A DNA stretch of 10,508 nt from Paramicrosporidium saccamoebae KSL3 (lineage: Eukaryota > Fungi > Cryptomycota): contig MTSL01000083.1 in NCBI GenBank assembly GCA_002794465.1, positions 1 through 10,508 of the forward strand, written 5' to 3'. Both the position numbers and the translations under genes were made by a program. This document shows positions 1 to 10,266 of this stretch, in pieces (the stretch's first letter is position 1; every line of letters starts with the position of its first letter). The notes beneath the pieces were generated by a model. It was given only the letters and a program-made list of their open reading frames with translations. It was not told where the DNA came from and searched no databases.

Positions 1-64
1 CACCTCCACCTCCACCTCCACCTCCACCTCCACCTCCACCTCCACCTCCACCGCCTCCGCCGCC
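1..64 (-). repeat. Coding hexamer microsatellite (GGAGGT)n on the minus strand, encoding poly-glycine
   Basis: CACCTC is repeated perfectly over 1-52 on the + strand, with further Gly codons to position 64. In frame with the USP ORF it gives at least 21 consecutive Gly. Confidence 0.95.
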
Positions 65-1117
65 AGCTCCGCCTTCAGCAATTTTATCAAGGCCGTTTTC
101 TAGCATATAGGCAACGATCGTATCTGACGGTTCAACGTGAGCGGAAAAACCAGGAACCTTCCACTTGTCGACTTCATCGTCACGAACGTAAAAGAATAAA
201 TGTGCCTCTTGTCCGTGTTGTAGTACACTTGCCCGTGATTGCTTAGTTACAACGGCGTCATTAAACCAGTACCAACTATCGTCGTTATTTGCATCAGTCT
301 TGACAATGGCAGTAAAATGTACACCGTGATGCAAGACCACCCCATAGAGATGATACAACAGTCCATTGACCCGCATTGTTTCAGTATAGTGTGTCGTGTA
401 ATCTCGATAGGTGGTAGTAAACAGGTTAGTATCTGGGGTTCTCCAAGGGTGATTTGCCTCGATAACGAGGATCGGTCCGCTTCCGGTAATCATCTCGACC
501 AGCTCGCCCATTAGCTCCCGTTCTTCCGAACTCTTTTTCCTCTCAGTAATCTGGCTTGACAAATTTGCGAGAATGTATTCCAGATTTTGCTCAACGGGCA
601 TTTTAGGGTCGATAGTCACGGCAACATGTGCCTGTTCCGTTATCTTTATATCTGATGGAGGTGTACCATCATTGTAGGTCCTGTAGGTGGCAGTACTGAC
701 GTTAAATAATGCCTTGAATTCCTTGTATACCGGGTCCTCTAGATCTTGCACGTTCTCCGGAAAGTCGGACAAAAGTCGCGTTACAACACGCCTTGCCTCA
801 TCGATACCTCCATCCTTTTCAACGTCAAGGTTCCTGGCAAGGCATTCGTTGCGGTATTTATAGTAAAAATCCGTGCCAGACTGCATCACCGGACCCTTAC
901 AGTTTTGCATTCTGGCAAAATGTGCAGCAAGACTGAGTTCGACCGTGTGGTCCTTAAAGTCCTCCCGGCTCAAGAGGTTGCGTCGCAAGCTGGGCAGATA
1001 GAAGAAACATTGAAGGACAGAGTTGATATAGCAGTTGTTCTTATTGTTGGAAAGCCCGGGAAGATTGGCTCCTGACACAAATAGCACCAAAAAGGACAAT
1101 AGCAGGAGAAACTTCAT
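1..1117 (-). CDS. Signal-peptide-bearing ubiquitin-specific protease (USP / peptidase C19 family); 3' end runs off the window (at least 372 aa)
   Basis: Manual translation from the ATG at 1117 stays open to position 1 (not in the ORF track). It begins MKFLLLLSFLVLFVSGA (basic residue, hydrophobic core, small residues), followed at once by the Cys-box GLSNNKNNCYINSVLQ (C29, nt 1031-1033). The His-box is YHLYGVVLHHGVHFTAIVK (H267, nt 317-319), then WYWFNDAVV (N286/D287) and AHLFFYVR, ending in at least 21 Gly. Confidence 0.9.
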   Translation of the reverse strand, partial: MKFLLLLSFLVLFVSGANLPGLSNNKNNCYINSVLQCFFYLPSLRRNLLSREDFKDHTVELSLAAHFARMQNCKGPVMQSGTDFYYKYRNECLARNLDVEKDGGIDEARRVVTRLLSDFPENVQDLEDPVYKEFKALFNVSTATYRTYNDGTPPSDIKITEQAHVAVTIDPKMPVEQNLEYILANLSSQITERKKSSEERELMGELVEMITGSGPILVIEANHPWRTPDTNLFTTTYRDYTTHYTETMRVNGLLYHLYGVVLHHGVHFTAIVKTDANNDDSWYWFNDAVVTKQSRASVLQHGQEAHLFFYVRDDEVDKWKVPGFSAHVEPSDTIVAYMLENGLDKIAEGGAGGGGGGGGGGGGGGGGGGGGG

Positions 1118-1174
1118 AGTGGCGCTGGTTTGTCCCTGGCTTTTCCTCGTCCCGTGGGCCTGTTATCCACTGAC

Positions 1175-1246
1175 AGCCAATAAGGAACGGCAGTGTCTGC
1201 CACTGACCAATTAAAGCGCCCGATAATTTGCCGAATAAACCAATCA
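1175..1246 (-). promoter_or_regulatory. Three CCAAT boxes (candidate NF-Y/HAP sites) upstream of the USP gene
   Basis: AGCCAATAAG (CCAAT 1177-1181), GACCAATTAA (1207-1211) and AACCAATCAG (1240-1244), all in the same orientation, 30 and 33 bp apart, about 60-125 bp upstream of ATG 1117. Confidence 0.5.
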
Positions 1247-1290
1247 GGTGTGCTTGAGTTTACAAGAGATGAGCATCGAGTGTTGGGCCA

Positions 1291-1374
1291 TGAGTTGTGA
1301 ATTGTGAATTGTGAATTGTGAGCTGTGGACTGTGAGTTTTGAATTGTGAGTTGTGAACTGCAAGTTGTAAGCAG
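1291..1374. repeat. Degenerate 7-bp tandem repeat (consensus TGAATTG/TGAGTTG), about 10-12 copies
   Basis: tgagttg tgaattg tgaattg tgaattg tgagctg tggactg tgagttt tgaattg tgagttg tgaactg (1291-1360), then the decayed units caagttg taagcag. Confidence 0.92.
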
Positions 1375-1944
1375 CGAAGGATTTGACTTGGACGAGACGC
1401 ATGCAACAGTGGAGAGTCCAGCATTTCTGGAAAGCAGCACAAGTGCAGCCTGTAAAAGTCAATAAATAGCCAAATCAAAAATGTGAATGTAAAGTGATAA
1501 AATATTTAGCCGGATGTGGGGCACTTGTCCAAATATAAAATGGAGAGTCAGAGGTGAGGAGTGGAAAGATTGGCATAATGTCGGAGAGTCCATACCAGTT
1601 GATAATTCCCCGTCACCCATTTATATTGACATCGTGGTAATGTAGTACACCCGCCATATACTAGTAGTGTGCGTACTGATGGCCCCAATTTAGTAACTGA
1701 AAAGATAATGTTATATCTAACAATATACTACTCATTTTAGTACACGGCAGTTTTTCCCACGCCATATCCATGACATCTCGAACTATAGTTAAGTTGTTCG
1801 CCTCGTGGGTATGACTCCGCGCCCTACCAACCCTGGCAATTATGCTCCAAGTCACATCCGAAGAGGGCAACGGCTCTCCTTCTGAGACTGGTGCACCGCC
1901 AGAGGCACATACAAAACGAATTATAGAGTACCCTAGACTCCCTG

Positions 1945-3441
1945 ATGACTAACCAACATAGTGACCTCACCAGCCTCTCGACGCCCGATCGTAAGAAACG
2001 CAAGACGGACGAATCCCGGACGATCTATCTTGGCGGCGTCCCGCCCACCATCACTGCCACTGCCCTACTCAACCACATCCGCGGCGGCGCCATCCTTTCT
2101 CTCCGCTTTCTTACTGAACGCAGCTGCGCATTTGTCGACTTTGTGGACGCAAAAGGGGCAGCGTCGTTTTACGGAAGGGGAAGGAGGATGTGTGTGGGTG
2201 GGGTGGAGGTGAGGGTTGGCTGGGCCAAGACGAGTGCAGTTTCGCAAAATGTGGAGACGGCAATACGGAATGGCGCATCAAGAAATGTTTTTATAGGAAA
2301 TCTTGATATTGACGAGGGAGCCACGCCAGAGGAGGAGGAGCAGTTGAGTGCTGAACTCAAAGCCCAAGTCGAACGGTTTGGGCTGGTAGAGCATATTAAG
2401 GTGGTTCCTGAAAGACACTGTGCCTTTGTGCACTTGACCAGTGTCGCCGATGCTATGAAAGCCGTCAGTGTCATGAGCGGAGAGGAACAGTGGCAAGGAA
2501 AACGACTCGGATTCGGTCGGGATCGTTGTTCCAACGAACCCAGTAAAGCCAAAAATCGGGAAAATGAGAAAGAAGAAGGCCAACTCGACACTGTACAGGA
2601 GGAAGCGCCCAAAAGGCCAGAAGCGCCTCTTCGGACTATTTACTTGGGCAGAATGCCACCAGAGACAACTGCCGAGGACCTTTGCAATATTATCCGCGGA
2701 GGAGCTTTGGAAAAGATTCGCGTTACTCCCGAGAAGCAATGCGCTTTTGTCACTTTTCTTGAACCCATGGCTGCACAATCTTTCTTTGACTTTGCCACCC
2801 AAGCAGGCATCTGGATTCGCGGTAATCGTCTGAAGCCTGGTTGGGGGCAGGCCTCCAGTCTTCCTGCCGCTGTGACTGTGGCCCTCCGTCAGGGAGCAAC
2901 CCGCAACGTCTATCTTGGCAACATTAATCTGTCCAACTTGACGGAAGACGACTTGCGTCGCTCCTTCTCCGCCTACGGACCCATCGAAATGATCAATTTC
3001 CTCAGAAAAGAACGCGACGTTGTCTTTGTCAATTTTTGCCAACTCCTTGATGCCGTCAAGGCGGTGGAGGGCGTCCGCAAGGATCCTCTTTTCCAGAATT
3101 GTAACATTAGCTATGGAAGGGATCGGTGCGCCCAACCGCTCCGGACGATCCCCGAGCCGAGGGAATTTGTGCCCGTTTCTGATCATTATTACCATCCTTC
3201 CATGCTGCGTGGCGTTTTGCCAAGATATCCTCCTCATTATCCTGCGATGACCCATCCCCCTCTATATCCTTTACAATATCATCCCCCCAGTGCAAATCCA
3301 TACCATCCCTCGCCGTCCTATTCTCCCCCTTCACATCCCTATCCTTATCCCTATCCATACCATTCTTACCCTTATCCCCCTCCTGATCCTTATGATCCTA
3401 CATTTCCTACCTATCATCATCCATCATATCGCCCCCATTAA
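1945..3441 (+). CDS. MRN1: Four-RRM RNA-binding protein, Mrn1 (S. cerevisiae) / Nrd1 (S. pombe) type, with a Pro/Tyr/His-rich C-terminal tail
   Basis: Two tandem RRM pairs: RTIYLGG...IRGG...CAFVDF...VGW then RNVFIGNL...CAFVHL...LGFGRDRC; and RTIYLGR...LCNIIRGG...CAFVTF...LKPGWG then RNVYLGNI...VFVNF...ISYGRDRC. This motif pattern is characteristic of the Mrn1/Nrd1 family as I know it. There is an in-frame stop upstream at 1924-1926. Confidence 0.85.
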   Translation: MTNQHSDLTSLSTPDRKKRKTDESRTIYLGGVPPTITATALLNHIRGGAILSLRFLTERSCAFVDFVDAKGAASFYGRGRRMCVGGVEVRVGWAKTSAVSQNVETAIRNGASRNVFIGNLDIDEGATPEEEEQLSAELKAQVERFGLVEHIKVVPERHCAFVHLTSVADAMKAVSVMSGEEQWQGKRLGFGRDRCSNEPSKAKNRENEKEEGQLDTVQEEAPKRPEAPLRTIYLGRMPPETTAEDLCNIIRGGALEKIRVTPEKQCAFVTFLEPMAAQSFFDFATQAGIWIRGNRLKPGWGQASSLPAAVTVALRQGATRNVYLGNINLSNLTEDDLRRSFSAYGPIEMINFLRKERDVVFVNFCQLLDAVKAVEGVRKDPLFQNCNISYGRDRCAQPLRTIPEPREFVPVSDHYYHPSMLRGVLPRYPPHYPAMTHPPLYPLQYHPPSANPYHPSPSYSPPSHPYPYPYPYHSYPYPPPDPYDPTFPTYHHPSYRPH

Positions 3442-4614: not shown

Positions 4615-6387
4615 ATGCTGCGGTGGTTCAGTATCCGACGCATCTTTTTCTGGGTCGCACTGTTCACCGTCATTTTGGTTTCACTAGTCTGGACGGGGAA
4701 ACAGCTGGCTCGCGTTGGTGATGGACACAGGCATGGGCGCGCAGGAGCACGGAAGCACGATACAGTATTGGCTGCAAGAAAGGCCAAGCTGCGGATGAGC
4801 CAGCAGAACCGTGAGGAAGTAAAGGAACCCCCCACCAAAAATACGGCCCCAAAGGATACAGATATGCCGAAAAATGAAAAGAAAAGGACACTATCACTAA
4901 CTGACGGGGAGGAGCTGGAGGAGGCCAAGCCCGTCATAATCCCCCAGCGGACTCGTACAGCAATCGAGGCATCCTTTCTCAGACCATTCCAAATGAAACA
5001 CACTGACATTAAGGCTGCCTTTGAGCAATTTAAGAATACCACCAGGACCATGGAGTCTTATCTGTGGGATCAATACCGTATTGTTGCGCTTCCCGCATCC
5101 ATCAAGGATAAAAACGGGAAAAACCTGAGACCCATTACTCGCTTCACAAAGTCTATCATCCGCCATGTTTCCATCTTTTACGGAGAATATCTTATGCGTG
5201 GCGGCACAGAGACGAGGCATTTTGGCGTCCCCGTGTGTCGGGAGATTGGCCTGGGAGAGAGTGATGGCCATGGAGAGGGCCAAGATCGTGGTGAGAACGA
5301 AGAATATCAGACTAAGGAGCTGAGTAGACTTGCAGGCTCTCAGGGAGATTTATTCTTCAAAGAGGTTCCTTATACGGTGGGAGGGGTGCGTGGGCCGTTT
5401 TCTCTGAACGAAAAGGGCAATGTCCAATTGGTGTCAAAACATTTCAAGGTGAAGAATCCGCGCAAGGACGGCAAGAAGGAGCATGTCAGTCAAGAGGAGC
5501 GTGATGTAGCGTTTGCCAAACGCATCTTTGGAAGAGAACACTATGCTCTTAGTACAGTTGCCCATCGAGGCGTTATCCAGCCGGTATGTTACGAAAAGGA
5601 GCCCACATTGAGAATGATTTATCCTTTCCTAAAAGGCGGCGATCTGGTAACATTATCCAGTGACCATTTATCTTTCTACGCACCAGCAAAGCCACGGCAT
5701 ATCCTCAAGCCTGATGAAACCTTCCTGCCTCGATTCTTCCGTCAACTCGTCGAGACTATTTATGCCATCCACCAGCAGGGAATCCTCCATCTGGACCTGA
5801 AGCCTGAAAATTTTGTCATATCCGGCCCCGATCGTAATTTCATCCTTCCCTCAGACTCCCCCGCCCTCTCTGACTACAGTCTGGTGCTGCTGGACTTTGG
5901 CTTGGCCATGCGCCTAGATGAGGTAAAGGAGAAGGACTGCATCCATGTCGGCACTGACGTCACCATGGCACCCGAACAGCACATTTGCAGACCCGCGGGC
6001 CGTGGCTCGGATTGGTGGTCCGTGGCTGCCGGCATGTGGCGCACCCGCGTCTTCTGGGAGCCCTCCATTACTGACGACCAGCGAGACGAGATATTAGATT
6101 CACGGTGCGCCCAATGGGGTCATTATGTCTATCCCACGCAACCATTCTTCCATCCAGAATTTTCAGCCTTGATGGATCTCATGTTGAAGCCAAGAGTGGA
6201 TGATCGTGATTTTAGTGCTGATAGAAAGTCGCTAAACAAATTGTTGGATTCTCCCTATCTTCTTCGTGGACTGGATCCACAGGCTAGAAGGAAACGCATG
6301 GCAGAGTTGGCAGCTGCGCCCGCTAATACCACTGAAACTGAGAGTGTATATTATTCCACAGAATTCACAAAATCGCACACATATTAA
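4615..6387 (+). CDS. Divergent Ser/Thr-type protein kinase with an N-terminal signal anchor/TM helix
   Basis: N-terminus MLRWFSIRRIFFWVALFTVILVSLVWTG. Kinase motifs: alphaC-like REHYALSTVAHRGVI, hinge YPFLKGGDL, HLDLKPEN (H392-N399), DFG (D427), GTDVTMAPE (E454) and DWWS. Confidence 0.9.
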   Translation: MLRWFSIRRIFFWVALFTVILVSLVWTGKQLARVGDGHRHGRAGARKHDTVLAARKAKLRMSQQNREEVKEPPTKNTAPKDTDMPKNEKKRTLSLTDGEELEEAKPVIIPQRTRTAIEASFLRPFQMKHTDIKAAFEQFKNTTRTMESYLWDQYRIVALPASIKDKNGKNLRPITRFTKSIIRHVSIFYGEYLMRGGTETRHFGVPVCREIGLGESDGHGEGQDRGENEEYQTKELSRLAGSQGDLFFKEVPYTVGGVRGPFSLNEKGNVQLVSKHFKVKNPRKDGKKEHVSQEERDVAFAKRIFGREHYALSTVAHRGVIQPVCYEKEPTLRMIYPFLKGGDLVTLSSDHLSFYAPAKPRHILKPDETFLPRFFRQLVETIYAIHQQGILHLDLKPENFVISGPDRNFILPSDSPALSDYSLVLLDFGLAMRLDEVKEKDCIHVGTDVTMAPEQHICRPAGRGSDWWSVAAGMWRTRVFWEPSITDDQRDEILDSRCAQWGHYVYPTQPFFHPEFSALMDLMLKPRVDDRDFSADRKSLNKLLDSPYLLRGLDPQARRKRMAELAAAPANTTETESVYYSTEFTKSHTY

Positions 6388-6655: not shown

Positions 6656-6985
6656 ATGGTGCTAATACACGCATCTCTAATATTGATGGTCCTCGCCATT
6701 GCAAATGGTCTCCCCTCGGGCTTGGTAAATCTGGGCAATACGTGCTATATGAACTCTATTCTACAAAACTTGCACCATCTGCCAATGATGCGACACTGCG
6801 ATATTGCGCAGCGTTGGTCACTAATGTTCCATACGATAGATAACAATAGACTGCGGATCTCTTTTAGAATGATTGGAATCGCCTACTCGGAGAGTCTCAA
6901 GGACCTCTATCTCTCGGCCCCGGTCCTTTATATACAAGCTCTTACACAATCGGCATTCTTTGTTATACATGCAAGGAGACTTTGA
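6656..6985 (+). pseudogene. Truncated signal-peptide + USP Cys-box ORF (109 aa), probable remnant of a secreted deubiquitinase paralogue
   Basis: MVLIHASLILMVLAIANG is followed by LPSGLVNLGNTCYMNSILQNLHHLP, a near-canonical USP Cys-box. It stops at 6985. I found no His-box in any + frame downstream, where the sequence is occupied by SNF5. Confidence 0.7.
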
Positions 6986-8036: not shown

Positions 8037-8161
8037 GAGTGATTCGTGCGAGGTCGGTGAGAAATGGGTCGTATGGCGGCCCTTTAACTCTGTTTAATAG
8101 AAGATATACCTGTGAGAACTTTGTTTCTTATGAGATAGCATGACTACGGACCAGGAATGTC

Positions 8162-8167
8162 AATAAA
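8162..8167 (+). promoter_or_regulatory. Candidate polyadenylation signal AATAAA for SNF5
   Basis: AATAAA in the 301-bp convergent spacer between SNF5 and the esterase; the evidence is position only. Confidence 0.3.
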
Positions 8168-8337
8168 AGGTCTGCTAAACAGTGTCCACTTATTATTAGA
8201 GCAAATCTGACCCAAATGGCGATTCCACGGCCCATTTCTTGTCTATAAAAAACTAGATACTTTAACAAAACGAATGCTCTCATCAATAAGGTATTTTTAC
8301 TCAAACCTCATGCTTCTATAAATTGCAATGGCGATAC

Positions 8338-10266
8338 TTAAAAACGCCGAGGAACTGTCTTTGTAGTGTGAGAACGGGAGTTGTGGGCTGTTGCCTTTGC
8401 GTTGTTTTTGGCCTTTTCAGGATTCACCTTTTTAACTTCCACCTTTTTCACTTCTTTCGTCTTCAGAGTAGCGTCTTTGTGGTCTTTCTTTCCGGGATTT
8501 TCCTTTTCTTCCGTCTTTGTAGCCTTTGACCTTTTTTTCTTGTCAACAATCTGGACAGGAGCTTCCTCTTTATATTCACCTATCACAGAATTCACATCCA
8601 AACTCAATTTCTCAGTGTAGAGCATCTCTACTGCCTGACGGGGATTGATTTTTGTCGCAGGCTTGCACGGTCTGCGTAGTTTCTCAAATGCTGGGCCTTC
8701 ACCCTTGATAAATCCAAACAGTGGACGGAGAACTTGACGGCACTGGGCAGGGCTAGATAGTGATTCAATTGTTCTAGTTCCAGCAGAGTCAAGTTTAGTG
8801 TTAAAAATCAACGCTTGCTCGAGGCCATGGAAGGTCCCCATCGACTCCAGCACATTTAATGCCTCCCCTAACGGAAACTTGTAGAGGTGAGCACTGACCA
8901 TTGCAGCCATTCTCGCCCAGGCGGAGCTAATGATATCCAGAGTGAACTGGAACTGGTGACCATGTGCGGTCAAACCATGTGATCTGTAATATTCCAAAGA
9001 CTTGAGGGCGGGGTTGATAAAGATGGAATCGGTGGCAGCGCAAACAACGGCTTTATAGGAGCTGTTTCCATAATTGGAGGGAGGGTAACTACCTTCGAAA
9101 GATTCGACTAGGTCCTCACGGCCAAGCATAGCCCACAATTGGTGGCCATCCTTTGTTAAATGTTCCTGATTTCTGATACAGAAGAGACCGCAATCATCGG
9201 CTGTTGCAGTGACAAGAATTTCAACACCTTTCATGAACAGACCATTCTTTAGATGATGTTCGGCATTGCCAACCAGATACTTTCCATCACGGACCGGTCC
9301 CCACATTACCTTGATATCACGAGAAGCCTCAACTATCTGAGCTCCTGTCATCTTTTGCAGACACTCTAACAAAGCATCACCCGTCTTAGCTTTACAATCG
9401 GTATTGGCAACCACAAGGTTTTGGCGAGCAATGGCTTCTTCAGTTGTAATGGAATCAAACATGGAAGCTGTTCCGCTCATCAAAATTAGCTTATGGAACG
9501 GATTATTATTCTTAAAGCCAAGGTCCTCCTTCTTGTGGAGCTTAAAATGGACGCACTGGGCCAAGGCAGCCCCAGCCGAATGTCCAATAACTGTCACGTT
9601 ATTAGGATCTCCGTGAAACTTGGCAATATGATCCTGTACCCAGCGGAGTGCCTGAATGATCCCAACTAGAGCCGCGTTGGTGTGGTACTTGTCGGGTTTG
9701 ACAGCATCCTTGCTATGCCAGAAGCCAAGGGCCCCCAGAGGATAGCCGACGTTAACCCAAATCGTGTCGGGACTAAAGTCTTCAAAACGATAAGCGCCCT
9801 GTGGATCATTCAGGGCCATGTTGGGGGCCCCAGCATCCATGCCGCCGCCGTGAATGTAGAATACTACGCGCTTTTTCTCGGCAGTCTTCTCCCCGACTGG
9901 AACGAAAATATCCAATGTATGGCATTTCAAGGCATCAGTTGTCGCACCCCCCGTAGAAATCAATGCATCCACTATCGGTTTAGCTTCTCCAGGCACGTTA
10001 AAGTTGTCTAGCTGGGGACTGATACTGCTAAGCTGAGTAGCATCAATAATCGTCTTCTTATTAGCCTTATAGACGACAGCCTCAGATTCAACAAACAACT
10101 TTTCTCGAGTGGCATATTGGATACCAGTGTACTTGTGCACCGTGAGATTCTTTGGTTTCACTGAAATCTCTGTACCCTTGACATATACATTGTCACCCAA
10201 TTTGACCAATGCCTCACAGAGGGCTGAGGAGAAGAAGCAGGCAATGAGAGCAATTCCAACACGCAT
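8338..10266 (-). CDS. Secreted type-B carboxylesterase/lipase (cholinesterase-like alpha/beta hydrolase) with a Lys-rich C-terminal tail
   Basis: Signal peptide MRVGIALIACFFSSALCEA. Motifs: KCHTLDIFVP, VFYIHGGG (oxyanion hole), YPLGALGF, ALRWVQDHIAKFHGDPNNVTVIGHSAGA (S230, GHSAG at nt 9571-9585), LILMSG, WGPVRDG and GTFHGLEQ (H480). Confidence 0.92.
   Translation of the reverse strand: MRVGIALIACFFSSALCEALVKLGDNVYVKGTEISVKPKNLTVHKYTGIQYATREKLFVESEAVVYKANKKTIIDATQLSSISPQLDNFNVPGEAKPIVDALISTGGATTDALKCHTLDIFVPVGEKTAEKKRVVFYIHGGGMDAGAPNMALNDPQGAYRFEDFSPDTIWVNVGYPLGALGFWHSKDAVKPDKYHTNAALVGIIQALRWVQDHIAKFHGDPNNVTVIGHSAGAALAQCVHFKLHKKEDLGFKNNNPFHKLILMSGTASMFDSITTEEAIARQNLVVANTDCKAKTGDALLECLQKMTGAQIVEASRDIKVMWGPVRDGKYLVGNAEHHLKNGLFMKGVEILVTATADDCGLFCIRNQEHLTKDGHQLWAMLGREDLVESFEGSYPPSNYGNSSYKAVVCAATDSIFINPALKSLEYYRSHGLTAHGHQFQFTLDIISSAWARMAAMVSAHLYKFPLGEALNVLESMGTFHGLEQALIFNTKLDSAGTRTIESLSSPAQCRQVLRPLFGFIKGEGPAFEKLRRPCKPATKINPRQAVEMLYTEKLSLDVNSVIGEYKEEAPVQIVDKKKRSKATKTEEKENPGKKDHKDATLKTKEVKKVEVKKVNPEKAKNNAKATAHNSRSHTTKTVPRRF

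Follow-up and report, generated by a model that had tools for sequence, protein, structure and literature searches.

A family of ubiquitin-specific proteases with secretion-type leaders in the intranuclear parasite Paramicrosporidium saccamoebae and in metagenomes: candidate host-directed deubiquitinases

The 10,508-bp record MTSL01000083.1 of Paramicrosporidium saccamoebae (assembly GCA_002794465.1) is analysed here in its entirety and is referred to as the window. At one end it carries an incomplete gene for a ubiquitin-specific protease (USP; peptidase C19), whose catalytic domain follows almost directly upon a short hydrophobic N-terminal leader. This arrangement is conserved in a discrete family composed of the window protein, two adjacent P. 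saccamoebae paralogues and about 25 metagenomic proteins. The interpretation we favour, with modest confidence, is that the window protein is an active USP which is exported through the Sec pathway or displayed at the surface, and which acts on the ubiquitin system of the host.

An initial annotation, made from the letters of the window alone, had proposed a deubiquitinase exported by an intracellular eukaryote into the cell of its host. The window was identified through its RRM gene, which neighbours the USP gene, and P. saccamoebae (MTSL00000000) is an intranuclear parasite of the amoeba Saccamoeba; the producer is hence the kind of organism that had been anticipated.

The USP gene and its leader

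The features of the gene are listed below, with amino acids (aa) numbered from the start codon.

1117 to 2, minus strand: gene for a USP deubiquitinase with a predicted signal peptide, a partial coding sequence (CDS) of 372 codons, based on the open reading frame (ORF), the public gene table and the Pfam UCH match; the 3' end is lost at the contig end.
1163 to 1165, minus strand: in-frame TAA, 15 codons 5' of the ATG.
1067 to 1117, minus strand: leader, aa 1-17, with n-region MK, h-region FLLLLSFLVLFV and c-region SGA, based on its anatomy and its conservation in the family.
179 to 1057, minus strand: USP (peptidase C19) catalytic domain, aa 21-313, based on Pfam, on the family profile against USP7 and on a low-confidence structural model.
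992 to 1057, minus strand: USP Cys box, aa 21-42 (GLSNNKNNCYINSVLQCFFYLP), based on alignments, with oxyanion-hole N24, catalytic C29 and invariant Q36.
248 to 355, minus strand: His box, aa 255-290, with H267 (317-319), gatekeeper F268, W282 and N286/D287 (257-262).
74 to 178, minus strand: family-specific C-terminal extension, aa 314-348, with W319 and P322/P330, based on alignments (W302 and P313 are invariant in the numbering of the family alignment).
1 to 73, minus strand: (GGTGGA)n repeat that codes for a poly-Gly linker, aa 349-372, and in which the assembly stops.

The start ATG lies at 1117-1115, and the frame is free of stops from there down to base 2. Given the TAA upstream in the same frame, this ATG is the first one available; an in-frame stop was also found 5' of the family member P0016. 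The initial annotation had described the gene as missing from the gene track, which proved incorrect: the public gene table for GCA_002794465.1 already includes a 372-aa gene at 2..1117(-) as a partial CDS. The same table holds a spliced model for the esterase near the USP gene, which shows that the genome has introns and gives the table the look of a eukaryote-aware annotation.

The N-terminus of the window protein reads MKFLLLLSFLVLFVSGA, and the USP Cys box begins three residues further on, as the initial annotation had pointed out for the hydrophobic leader. This leader is the only strongly hydrophobic stretch among the 372 aa (Kyte-Doolittle 19-mer of about 2.0, with a runner-up of 1.17). 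Its h-region spans 12-15 residues and its -3/-1 positions are S/A, in agreement with the classical n/h/c anatomy of signal peptides, which combines a basic n-region, an h-region of 7-15 residues and small residues at -3/-1, and cleavage is predicted between SGA and NL (A17 and N18). The flank charge difference (C-N) is -1, and the linker to the catalytic core is 3 residues long.

Two other explanations of this N-terminus were considered and rejected. A mitochondrial presequence does not fit, as the leader is devoid of Arg and of an amphipathic pattern and is purely hydrophobic. The ORF at 1114-1440(-), considered as an upstream exon, is of low complexity, lies in another frame and spans a 7/14-bp tandem repeat; it looks non-coding.

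The USP domain and its catalytic residues

Pfam UCH (PF00443), the profile that had been suggested for checking the domain call, matches the window protein with E=2.2e-16 and 60.7 bits against a cut-off of 23.9, and UCH_1 reaches 36.2 bits against 22.2. With the canonical Cys box taken as G-L-x-N-x4-C-[YF]-x-N-[SA], the segment G21-L-S-N24-N-K-N-N-C29-Y-I-N-S-V-L-Q36 has the exact spacing when aligned to USP36 and USP7; the codon of C29 is at 1031-1033. In the His box, H267-F268 fall on the catalytic His and the aromatic gatekeeper, and F285-N286-D287 on the third catalytic position. A phmmer search against the sequences of the PDB aligned both the Cys and the His box to USP36, Ubp8, USP15, USP2 and USP7.

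The complete catalytic set reported initially (C29, H267 and N286-D287) is intact in its residues, but the His box around it is not canonical. The loop preceding H267 (BL2) reads H-H-G-V-H-F, in comparison with the canonical H-x-G-x4-G-H-Y, which corresponds to a gap of 5 residues against USP36 (HMMER) or of 4 residues when the family profile is aligned to USP7. The loop of the window protein is thus below the canonical length, a trait that is found family-wide. Since the catalytic residues, the oxyanion Asn, the Gln, the acidic motif and the gatekeeper are all kept, the protein is likely to be an active hydrolase for ubiquitin or for a modifier ending in Gly-Gly.

Structure prediction contributes little. 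The AlphaFold model obtained from the single sequence has a pLDDT (predicted local distance difference test) of 36.7 and is unusable, and the one obtained with a 4-sequence alignment has a pLDDT of 50.9 and a pTM (predicted template modelling score) of 0.59, with thumb and palm moderately confident. When this low-confidence model was submitted to Foldseek, the top 50 matches were all USPs, with probability 1.0 and a template modelling score of only 0.34-0.56; they include USP30, USP7, USP15, Ubp8, USP21 and USP2. The model is consequently taken to support a USP fold and nothing beyond it, be it the fingers or the geometry of BL2.

At the other end of the CDS, the (GGTGGA)n repeat has period 6 and 8.7 copies with a 100% match, at positions 1-52. 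As the window is the full record, it offers no sequence further to the left.

A discrete USP family

An exhaustive phmmer search with the window protein against 1.84 billion cluster representatives yielded 293 hits at E<=1e-3. With the window protein alone, a word-indexed protein search gave no match; it gave two with the full family alignment (apparently swamped by low-complexity tails) and one with the trimmed core alignment. In the JGI metagenomes, searched with the window protein alone, no related locus was found.

The family members are single-domain proteins of 330-580 aa. Nearly all complete members share the N-terminal hydrophobic leader with the Cys box a few residues further on, a short His box (x-P-G-H-[YF]) and a conserved C-terminal extension (FYVR…W…P..IP). 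A family hidden Markov model (HMM) was built from 19 trimmed cores. It assigns at least 223 bits to the members, including ten sequences outside the training set, and at most 126 bits to every canonical USP; divergent members with large inserts (P0034, P0028 and P0091) score 95-125. Identity within the family is only 20-28%, yet the leader is conserved across it. N24, C29, H267 and D287 are kept in at least 90% of the members, and the H, W and D are invariant in one family alignment. The fusion of a signal-peptide-like leader to a USP, which the initial annotation had singled out, is therefore real, but the window protein is one member of a family that has it and not a singular fusion.

The only members from a named species besides the window protein are PSACC_03621 (PJF16626.1) and PSACC_03620 (PJF16627.1), which are adjacent on a 188-kb contig and are both called 'USP domain-containing protein' in UniProt. 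Encoded in the same genome, they score 303 and 231 bits and have the short His box, and PSACC_03621 has the leader; they differ from the window protein in being about 26% identical to it, in their greater length (536 and 558 aa) and in low-complexity tails with ends resembling a ubiquitin-interacting motif (UIM). These tails end in D-D-E-D-I-R-A-A-I-A-L-S-L and D-D-D-L-A-M-A-L-A-M-S-M.

The remaining members all come from metagenome or SRA assemblies. Two environmental contigs were traced, and both are compact and carry eukaryotic, fungal-type genes (PAT1, eIF2-gamma, Opi1, Pkr1 and PTR2 in one; SPT16, BRO1 and PROPPIN in the other). One of the two, L003 (Logan SRR27341044), presents family genes in tandem, at 8141-9871 and 10214-11413. 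The second of these paralogues has a leader of its own (MRLRSLGIGWLLWLPTIVGAA) and, after the core, a Gly/Ser-rich linker in the same place as the poly-Gly of the window protein.

Some high-scoring sequences are not members. The top-scoring proteins of Thomomys, Cuculus and Pempheris (1700-3200 aa) were rejected given their canonical HxGxxxxGHY box, and the scores of these vertebrate matches sum over 3-10 tandem canonical domains of the USP17/36-like or USP18-like type. The models in question, P0001 (KAM4815304.1, Thomomys bottae, 3205 aa), P0004/P0013 (fish) and P0002/P0005 (birds), contain up to ten near-identical USP domains; in them, tandem gene arrays or megasatellites have been fused into one protein each.

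Individual members also present peculiarities. The deposited model of PSACC_03620 begins within the Cys box (MNFCYMSSVLQ…), and has neither the leader nor the G-x-x-N of PSACC_03621; its start codon was probably mis-called. P0018 and P0029 are both reported on one 59,153-bp contig, and the JGI label of the former, 'Fe2+ transport system protein FeoA', looks like a mis-annotation. P0028 (Logan contig, 504 aa) has a leader and a C-terminal transmembrane (TM) segment, and other residues stand in place of the catalytic Cys, His and Asp (…GSYSY…, …PGARY…, …HFDGVSV…), which makes it look like a pseudo-enzyme of the family. Apart from the family, the metagenomic proteins P0099, P0070, P0097, P0113 and P0085 have a canonical His box and yet carry leaders that resemble signal peptides or those of lipoproteins; some are AT-rich. 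Such proteins could be secreted USPs in their own right, from other intracellular organisms that are possibly bacterial.

Evidence for a secretion signal

A sequence was scored as having a leader if a hydrophobic 10-mer occurred at most 35 residues upstream of the Cys box, and N-terminally complete sequences were considered. Under this definition, a leader lies beside the Cys box in 20 of 23 family members and in 9 of the 115 other USPs in the hit list (Fisher p=2e-14); four of these nine are in fact divergent family members. The three members left have an N-terminal leader followed by a linker of 25-127 residues. These values indicate that the leader is more than a chance hydrophobic stretch.

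The properties of the leaders point towards translocation. Their uncharged cores span 8-20 residues, mostly 11-17. Subtracting the charge of the N-flank from that of the C-flank gives a negative value in 19 of 26 sequences, zero in 5 and a positive value in 2; with a negative value, the side expected to be translocated is the C-terminal one. The distance from the leader to the conserved core is as small as 2-8 residues in most members, which leaves no room for an enzyme that is tethered to a membrane and faces the cytosol. P0160 serves as the contrast case. This ascomycete USP, encoded beside a HET-domain gene, was excluded from the family for its N-terminal TM anchor and canonical domain, and its anchor counts about 20 hydrophobic residues, with a basic C-flank (ARKRG) and then a linker 25 residues long. 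The marks of a cytosol-facing anchor (i.e., a full-length TM segment of about 18-22 residues, a basic C-flank and a linker) were not found in the window protein.

Five members combine the leader with a C-terminal TM segment, two of them with clearly basic cytosolic tails. Such a combination suggests a type I topology, in which the USP domain would be exoplasmic. K/HDEL and glycosylphosphatidylinositol-type C-termini were looked for in the full-length members, and none were found.

Comparison with known deubiquitinases

Among canonical USPs, USP7/HAUSP is the best solved match to the window family, followed by USP12/46, USP2 and USP36. With them the family has in common its Cys and His boxes, an acidic QDE-like motif and the catalytic residues, and its profile can be aligned over the whole catalytic domain of USP7 (E=1e-26). 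The differences are considerable, however: identity is about 15-25%, BL2 is 4-5 residues shorter, the zinc-ribbon cysteines are absent, the secretion leader takes the place of cytosolic N-terminal extensions, and the family has a C-terminal extension of its own (…FYVR…W…P..IP). The window protein belongs to a divergent subfamily of peptidase C19 whose defining traits are the leader, a short BL2 and the C-terminal extension.

USP30 and the yeast enzymes Ubp16 and Ubp1 are membrane-anchored USPs that face the cytosol, and USP19 is reportedly tail-anchored and cytosol-facing too. Given these enzymes, it would be too simple to assume that USPs are never associated with membranes, although those named here face the cytosol. 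They resemble the window family in combining a USP domain with a hydrophobic targeting segment. Yet their full-length TM helices and linkers keep the catalytic domain cytosolic, whereas the leaders of the window family have a short core and a -3/-1 motif, abut the catalytic core, and are flanked by charges that favour translocation.

The deubiquitinases that intracellular bacteria and viruses deploy as effectors have been studied well. To our knowledge, secreted deubiquitinases of eukaryotic intracellular parasites are essentially undescribed. A literature search retrieved no paper linking Paramicrosporidium or Rozellomycota to deubiquitinases or to a secretome; the words ubiquitin, secret-, signal peptide and effector are all absent from the P. 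saccamoebae genome paper, and a 2022 review of parasite deubiquitinases makes no mention of signal peptides or secretion. Hence the family and its interpretation are apparently undescribed within the searchable literature, with the sequences themselves public as 'hypothetical' or 'USP domain-containing'.

The closest parallels, likened here by their descriptions, are bacterial. TssM of Burkholderia is stated to be the sole bacterial effector deubiquitinase of the USP type to have been described; type II secretion releases it when the bacterium has become free in the cytosol of the host, and its proposed role is to remove ubiquitin from the surface of the invader (PMC10719079). As is proposed for the window protein, a deubiquitinase of USP fold, a general Sec-dependent export and a producer in contact with the contents of the host cell come together. 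TssM is bacterial, without the fingers subdomain and with an Ig-like N-terminal domain, whereas the window protein has an insert of fingers length between its boxes (about 180 aa) and a eukaryotic leader of the type that directs proteins to the endoplasmic reticulum (ER). In deubiquitinases, the aromatic residue after the catalytic His selects the penultimate Gly (PMC10719079), and this gatekeeper is kept as F/Y in the window family. The USP-domain proteins Aasi_0770/Aasi_1805 of Amoebophilus asiaticus and CAHE_0028 of Cardinium hertigii have been proposed to act on host ubiquitin, and the former likewise belong to an intracellular organism whose host is an amoeba (PMC3486910). These proteins differ from the window protein in being bacterial, in having canonical conserved boxes and in using other secretion routes.

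Proposed role and alternative explanations

According to the favoured reading, the USP would enter the secretory pathway of the parasite by means of a short N-terminal signal peptide that is probably cleaved. The catalytic domain would thereby end up outside the parasite cytosol, either released or, in the relatives with a C-terminal TM segment, displayed at the surface. We know of no ubiquitin in the secretory lumen, and for this reason an exported USP makes sense only where the ubiquitin of another cell is met. Because the parasite is intranuclear, the likely meeting place is the host nucleus: within the nucleus of the amoeba, the enzyme would encounter host ubiquitin, or a ubiquitin-like modifier ending in Gly-Gly, and would take it off host proteins or the surface of the parasite. 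This removal would blunt ubiquitin-based responses of the host, to the benefit of the parasite. Comparison with relatives supports this proposal, which was already that of the initial annotation, and strengthens it with observations that the window by itself does not offer, namely the tandem paralogues, the UIM-like motifs, the members with both a leader and a C-terminal TM segment, and the lack of K/HDEL C-termini.

Several observations weigh against the proposal. The leader was called by classical rules and conservation. The C-terminus of the window protein is missing, so that a downstream TM segment, a retention signal or another domain is possible. In several relatives the last small residue is followed directly by a Pro (…A-PVG), an unfavourable context for cleavage at that bond, and some leaders of the family may be cleaved earlier or retained as type II anchors. 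In P0006, which bears a TM segment, the more basic flank precedes that segment. The shortened BL2 might alter or abolish binding of the ubiquitin tail, and the fingers region has a pLDDT below 50 in the 4-sequence model. The UIM-like tails of the paralogues match Pfam UIM with E=0.005, below the cut-off, and are absent from the other members. Finally, the environmental members are of uncertain taxonomy and lifestyle, and the link with parasitism rests on one named species.

One alternative is an uncleaved leader that would anchor the protein in the membrane of a parasite organelle, be it the ER, a mitochondrion or a peroxisome, with the USP domain turned to the cytosol and in the service of the parasite's own ubiquitin system. 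Cytosol-facing membrane USPs are well established, as USP30, USP19, Ubp16 and Ubp1 illustrate; the Pro at +1 disfavours the most obvious cleavage site of several relatives; and P0006 is strongly basic before its C-terminal TM segment. We nevertheless regard such an anchor as unlikely. The h-region, with 12-15 residues here and 8-20 in the family, is mostly too short for a stable TM segment, in 19 of 26 sequences the charges of the flanks speak for a translocated C-terminal side, and only 3 residues lie between leader and core in the window protein. The anchored-looking P0160 differs in the length of its segment, its basic C-flank and its 25-aa linker, and a leader plus a C-terminal TM segment makes little sense for an enzyme that faces the cytosol.

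A second alternative accepts secretion, or residence in the lumen, and questions the substrate. The protein could be a papain-fold protease or esterase that has been repurposed and no longer acts on ubiquitin, its substrate being a non-ubiquitin Gly-Gly modifier or something different altogether, such as components of the spore, the polar filament or the host surface. This would be in line with a BL2 that lacks 4-5 residues relative to every canonical USP of the hit list, and with a faint match of P0016 to Peptidase_C98 (SUMO-specific USP-like) in that place, at E=0.0018 and below the cut-off. Functional drift has evidently occurred in P0028, which lost the Cys, His and Asp, and the USP-type TssM is itself said to cleave non-protein ubiquitin conjugates as an esterase. 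Against this, the family has kept its oxyanion Asn and invariant Gln as well as the conserved acidic 'DD..F' motif and an aromatic gatekeeper, and its profile matches the catalytic domain of USP7 strongly over the full length (E=1e-26); the UIM-like motifs of both P. saccamoebae paralogues also point to ubiquitin. Complete repurposing thus appears improbable, and somewhat more so than the anchor.

That the leader is an artefact of the gene model and the true protein starts elsewhere, or that the locus is a decaying or unexpressed pseudogene, is very improbable. Three points could be cited for it: the CDS is incomplete, as the contig stops in a repeat; a truncated paralogue relic is present on the same contig; and the genome has introns. 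Against it, the 372 codons run without interruption and retain every catalytic residue, the leader passes into the Cys box within a single frame that a stop closes 15 codons upstream, and the junction of leader and core is kept in some 20 divergent homologues that were assembled independently.

The proposal of an exported, host-directed USP can be extended to the family as a whole, although we put forward this extension as a tentative idea that is somewhat more likely to be wrong than right. Rozellomycota related to Paramicrosporidium would carry a lineage-specific, tandemly duplicating family of short-BL2 USPs, arisen from the USP repertoire of the parasite and exported by the classical secretory pathway in soluble, UIM-tailed or membrane-displayed form, so as to touch the nucleoplasm or cytoplasm of the host directly, which would strip ubiquitin or ubiquitin-like marks of the host. 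Their targets would be the parasite surface or host nuclear proteins, which would make them an analogue of the bacterial deubiquitinases that counter xenophagy. If true, these would be the first secreted USP effectors that act from one eukaryote upon another.

A USP family with a secretion leader in a lineage basal to Microsporidia provides a testable handle on how parasites deal with ubiquitin-based host defence. It may also reveal how an intranuclear parasite manipulates the chromatin or the nuclear proteostasis of its host. In addition, a natural USP variant with a truncated BL2, without zinc ribbon and presumably folded in the secretory pathway could inform studies of USP gating and specificity.

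A probable paralogue relic and the neighbouring genes

The window holds a second sequence of this kind:

6656 to 6985, plus strand: 109-aa ORF with a leader and a USP Cys box (MVLIHASLILMVLAIANG-LPSGLVNLGNTCYMNSILQNLHHLP) in its first ~47 aa, based on tblastn and Pfam.

In tblastn this ORF is 37.5% identical (E=1.8e-4), and it is also matched by P0012, P0015 and P0041. Pfam UCH scores 33.3 bits against the cut-off of 23.9, covering profile positions 2-31 only, and no USP similarity was found in the rest of the 109 aa. The ORF overlaps the start of the SNF5 gene in a different frame and is absent from the gene table. It is probably the truncated relic of a USP paralogue.

The other genes of the contig are ordinary eukaryotic ones, encoding an RRM protein, PIG-X, a protein kinase, SNF5 and a carboxylesterase. 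Given that base composition is even along the whole contig, the USP ORF is considered native to it. The USP gene and the RRM gene are separated by a divergent intergenic region of 828 bp, in which the 7/14-bp tandem repeat mentioned above is located (1291-1368; TGAATTG / TGAGTTGTGAATTG; 5.6-9.6 copies with a match of ~79%). Antisense to the RRM gene there is a 325-aa ORF at 2278-3255(-) without a Pfam match, most likely a chance frame.

Two of the neighbours also have hydrophobic N-termini. The protein kinase at 4615-6387(+) begins with a 19-residue hydrophobic segment after basic residues (MLRWFSIRRIFFWVALFTVILVSLVWTG), which suggests that it is membrane-anchored, and the N-terminus of the carboxylesterase at 8338-10266(-) resembles a signal peptide (MRVGIALIACFFSSALCEA).

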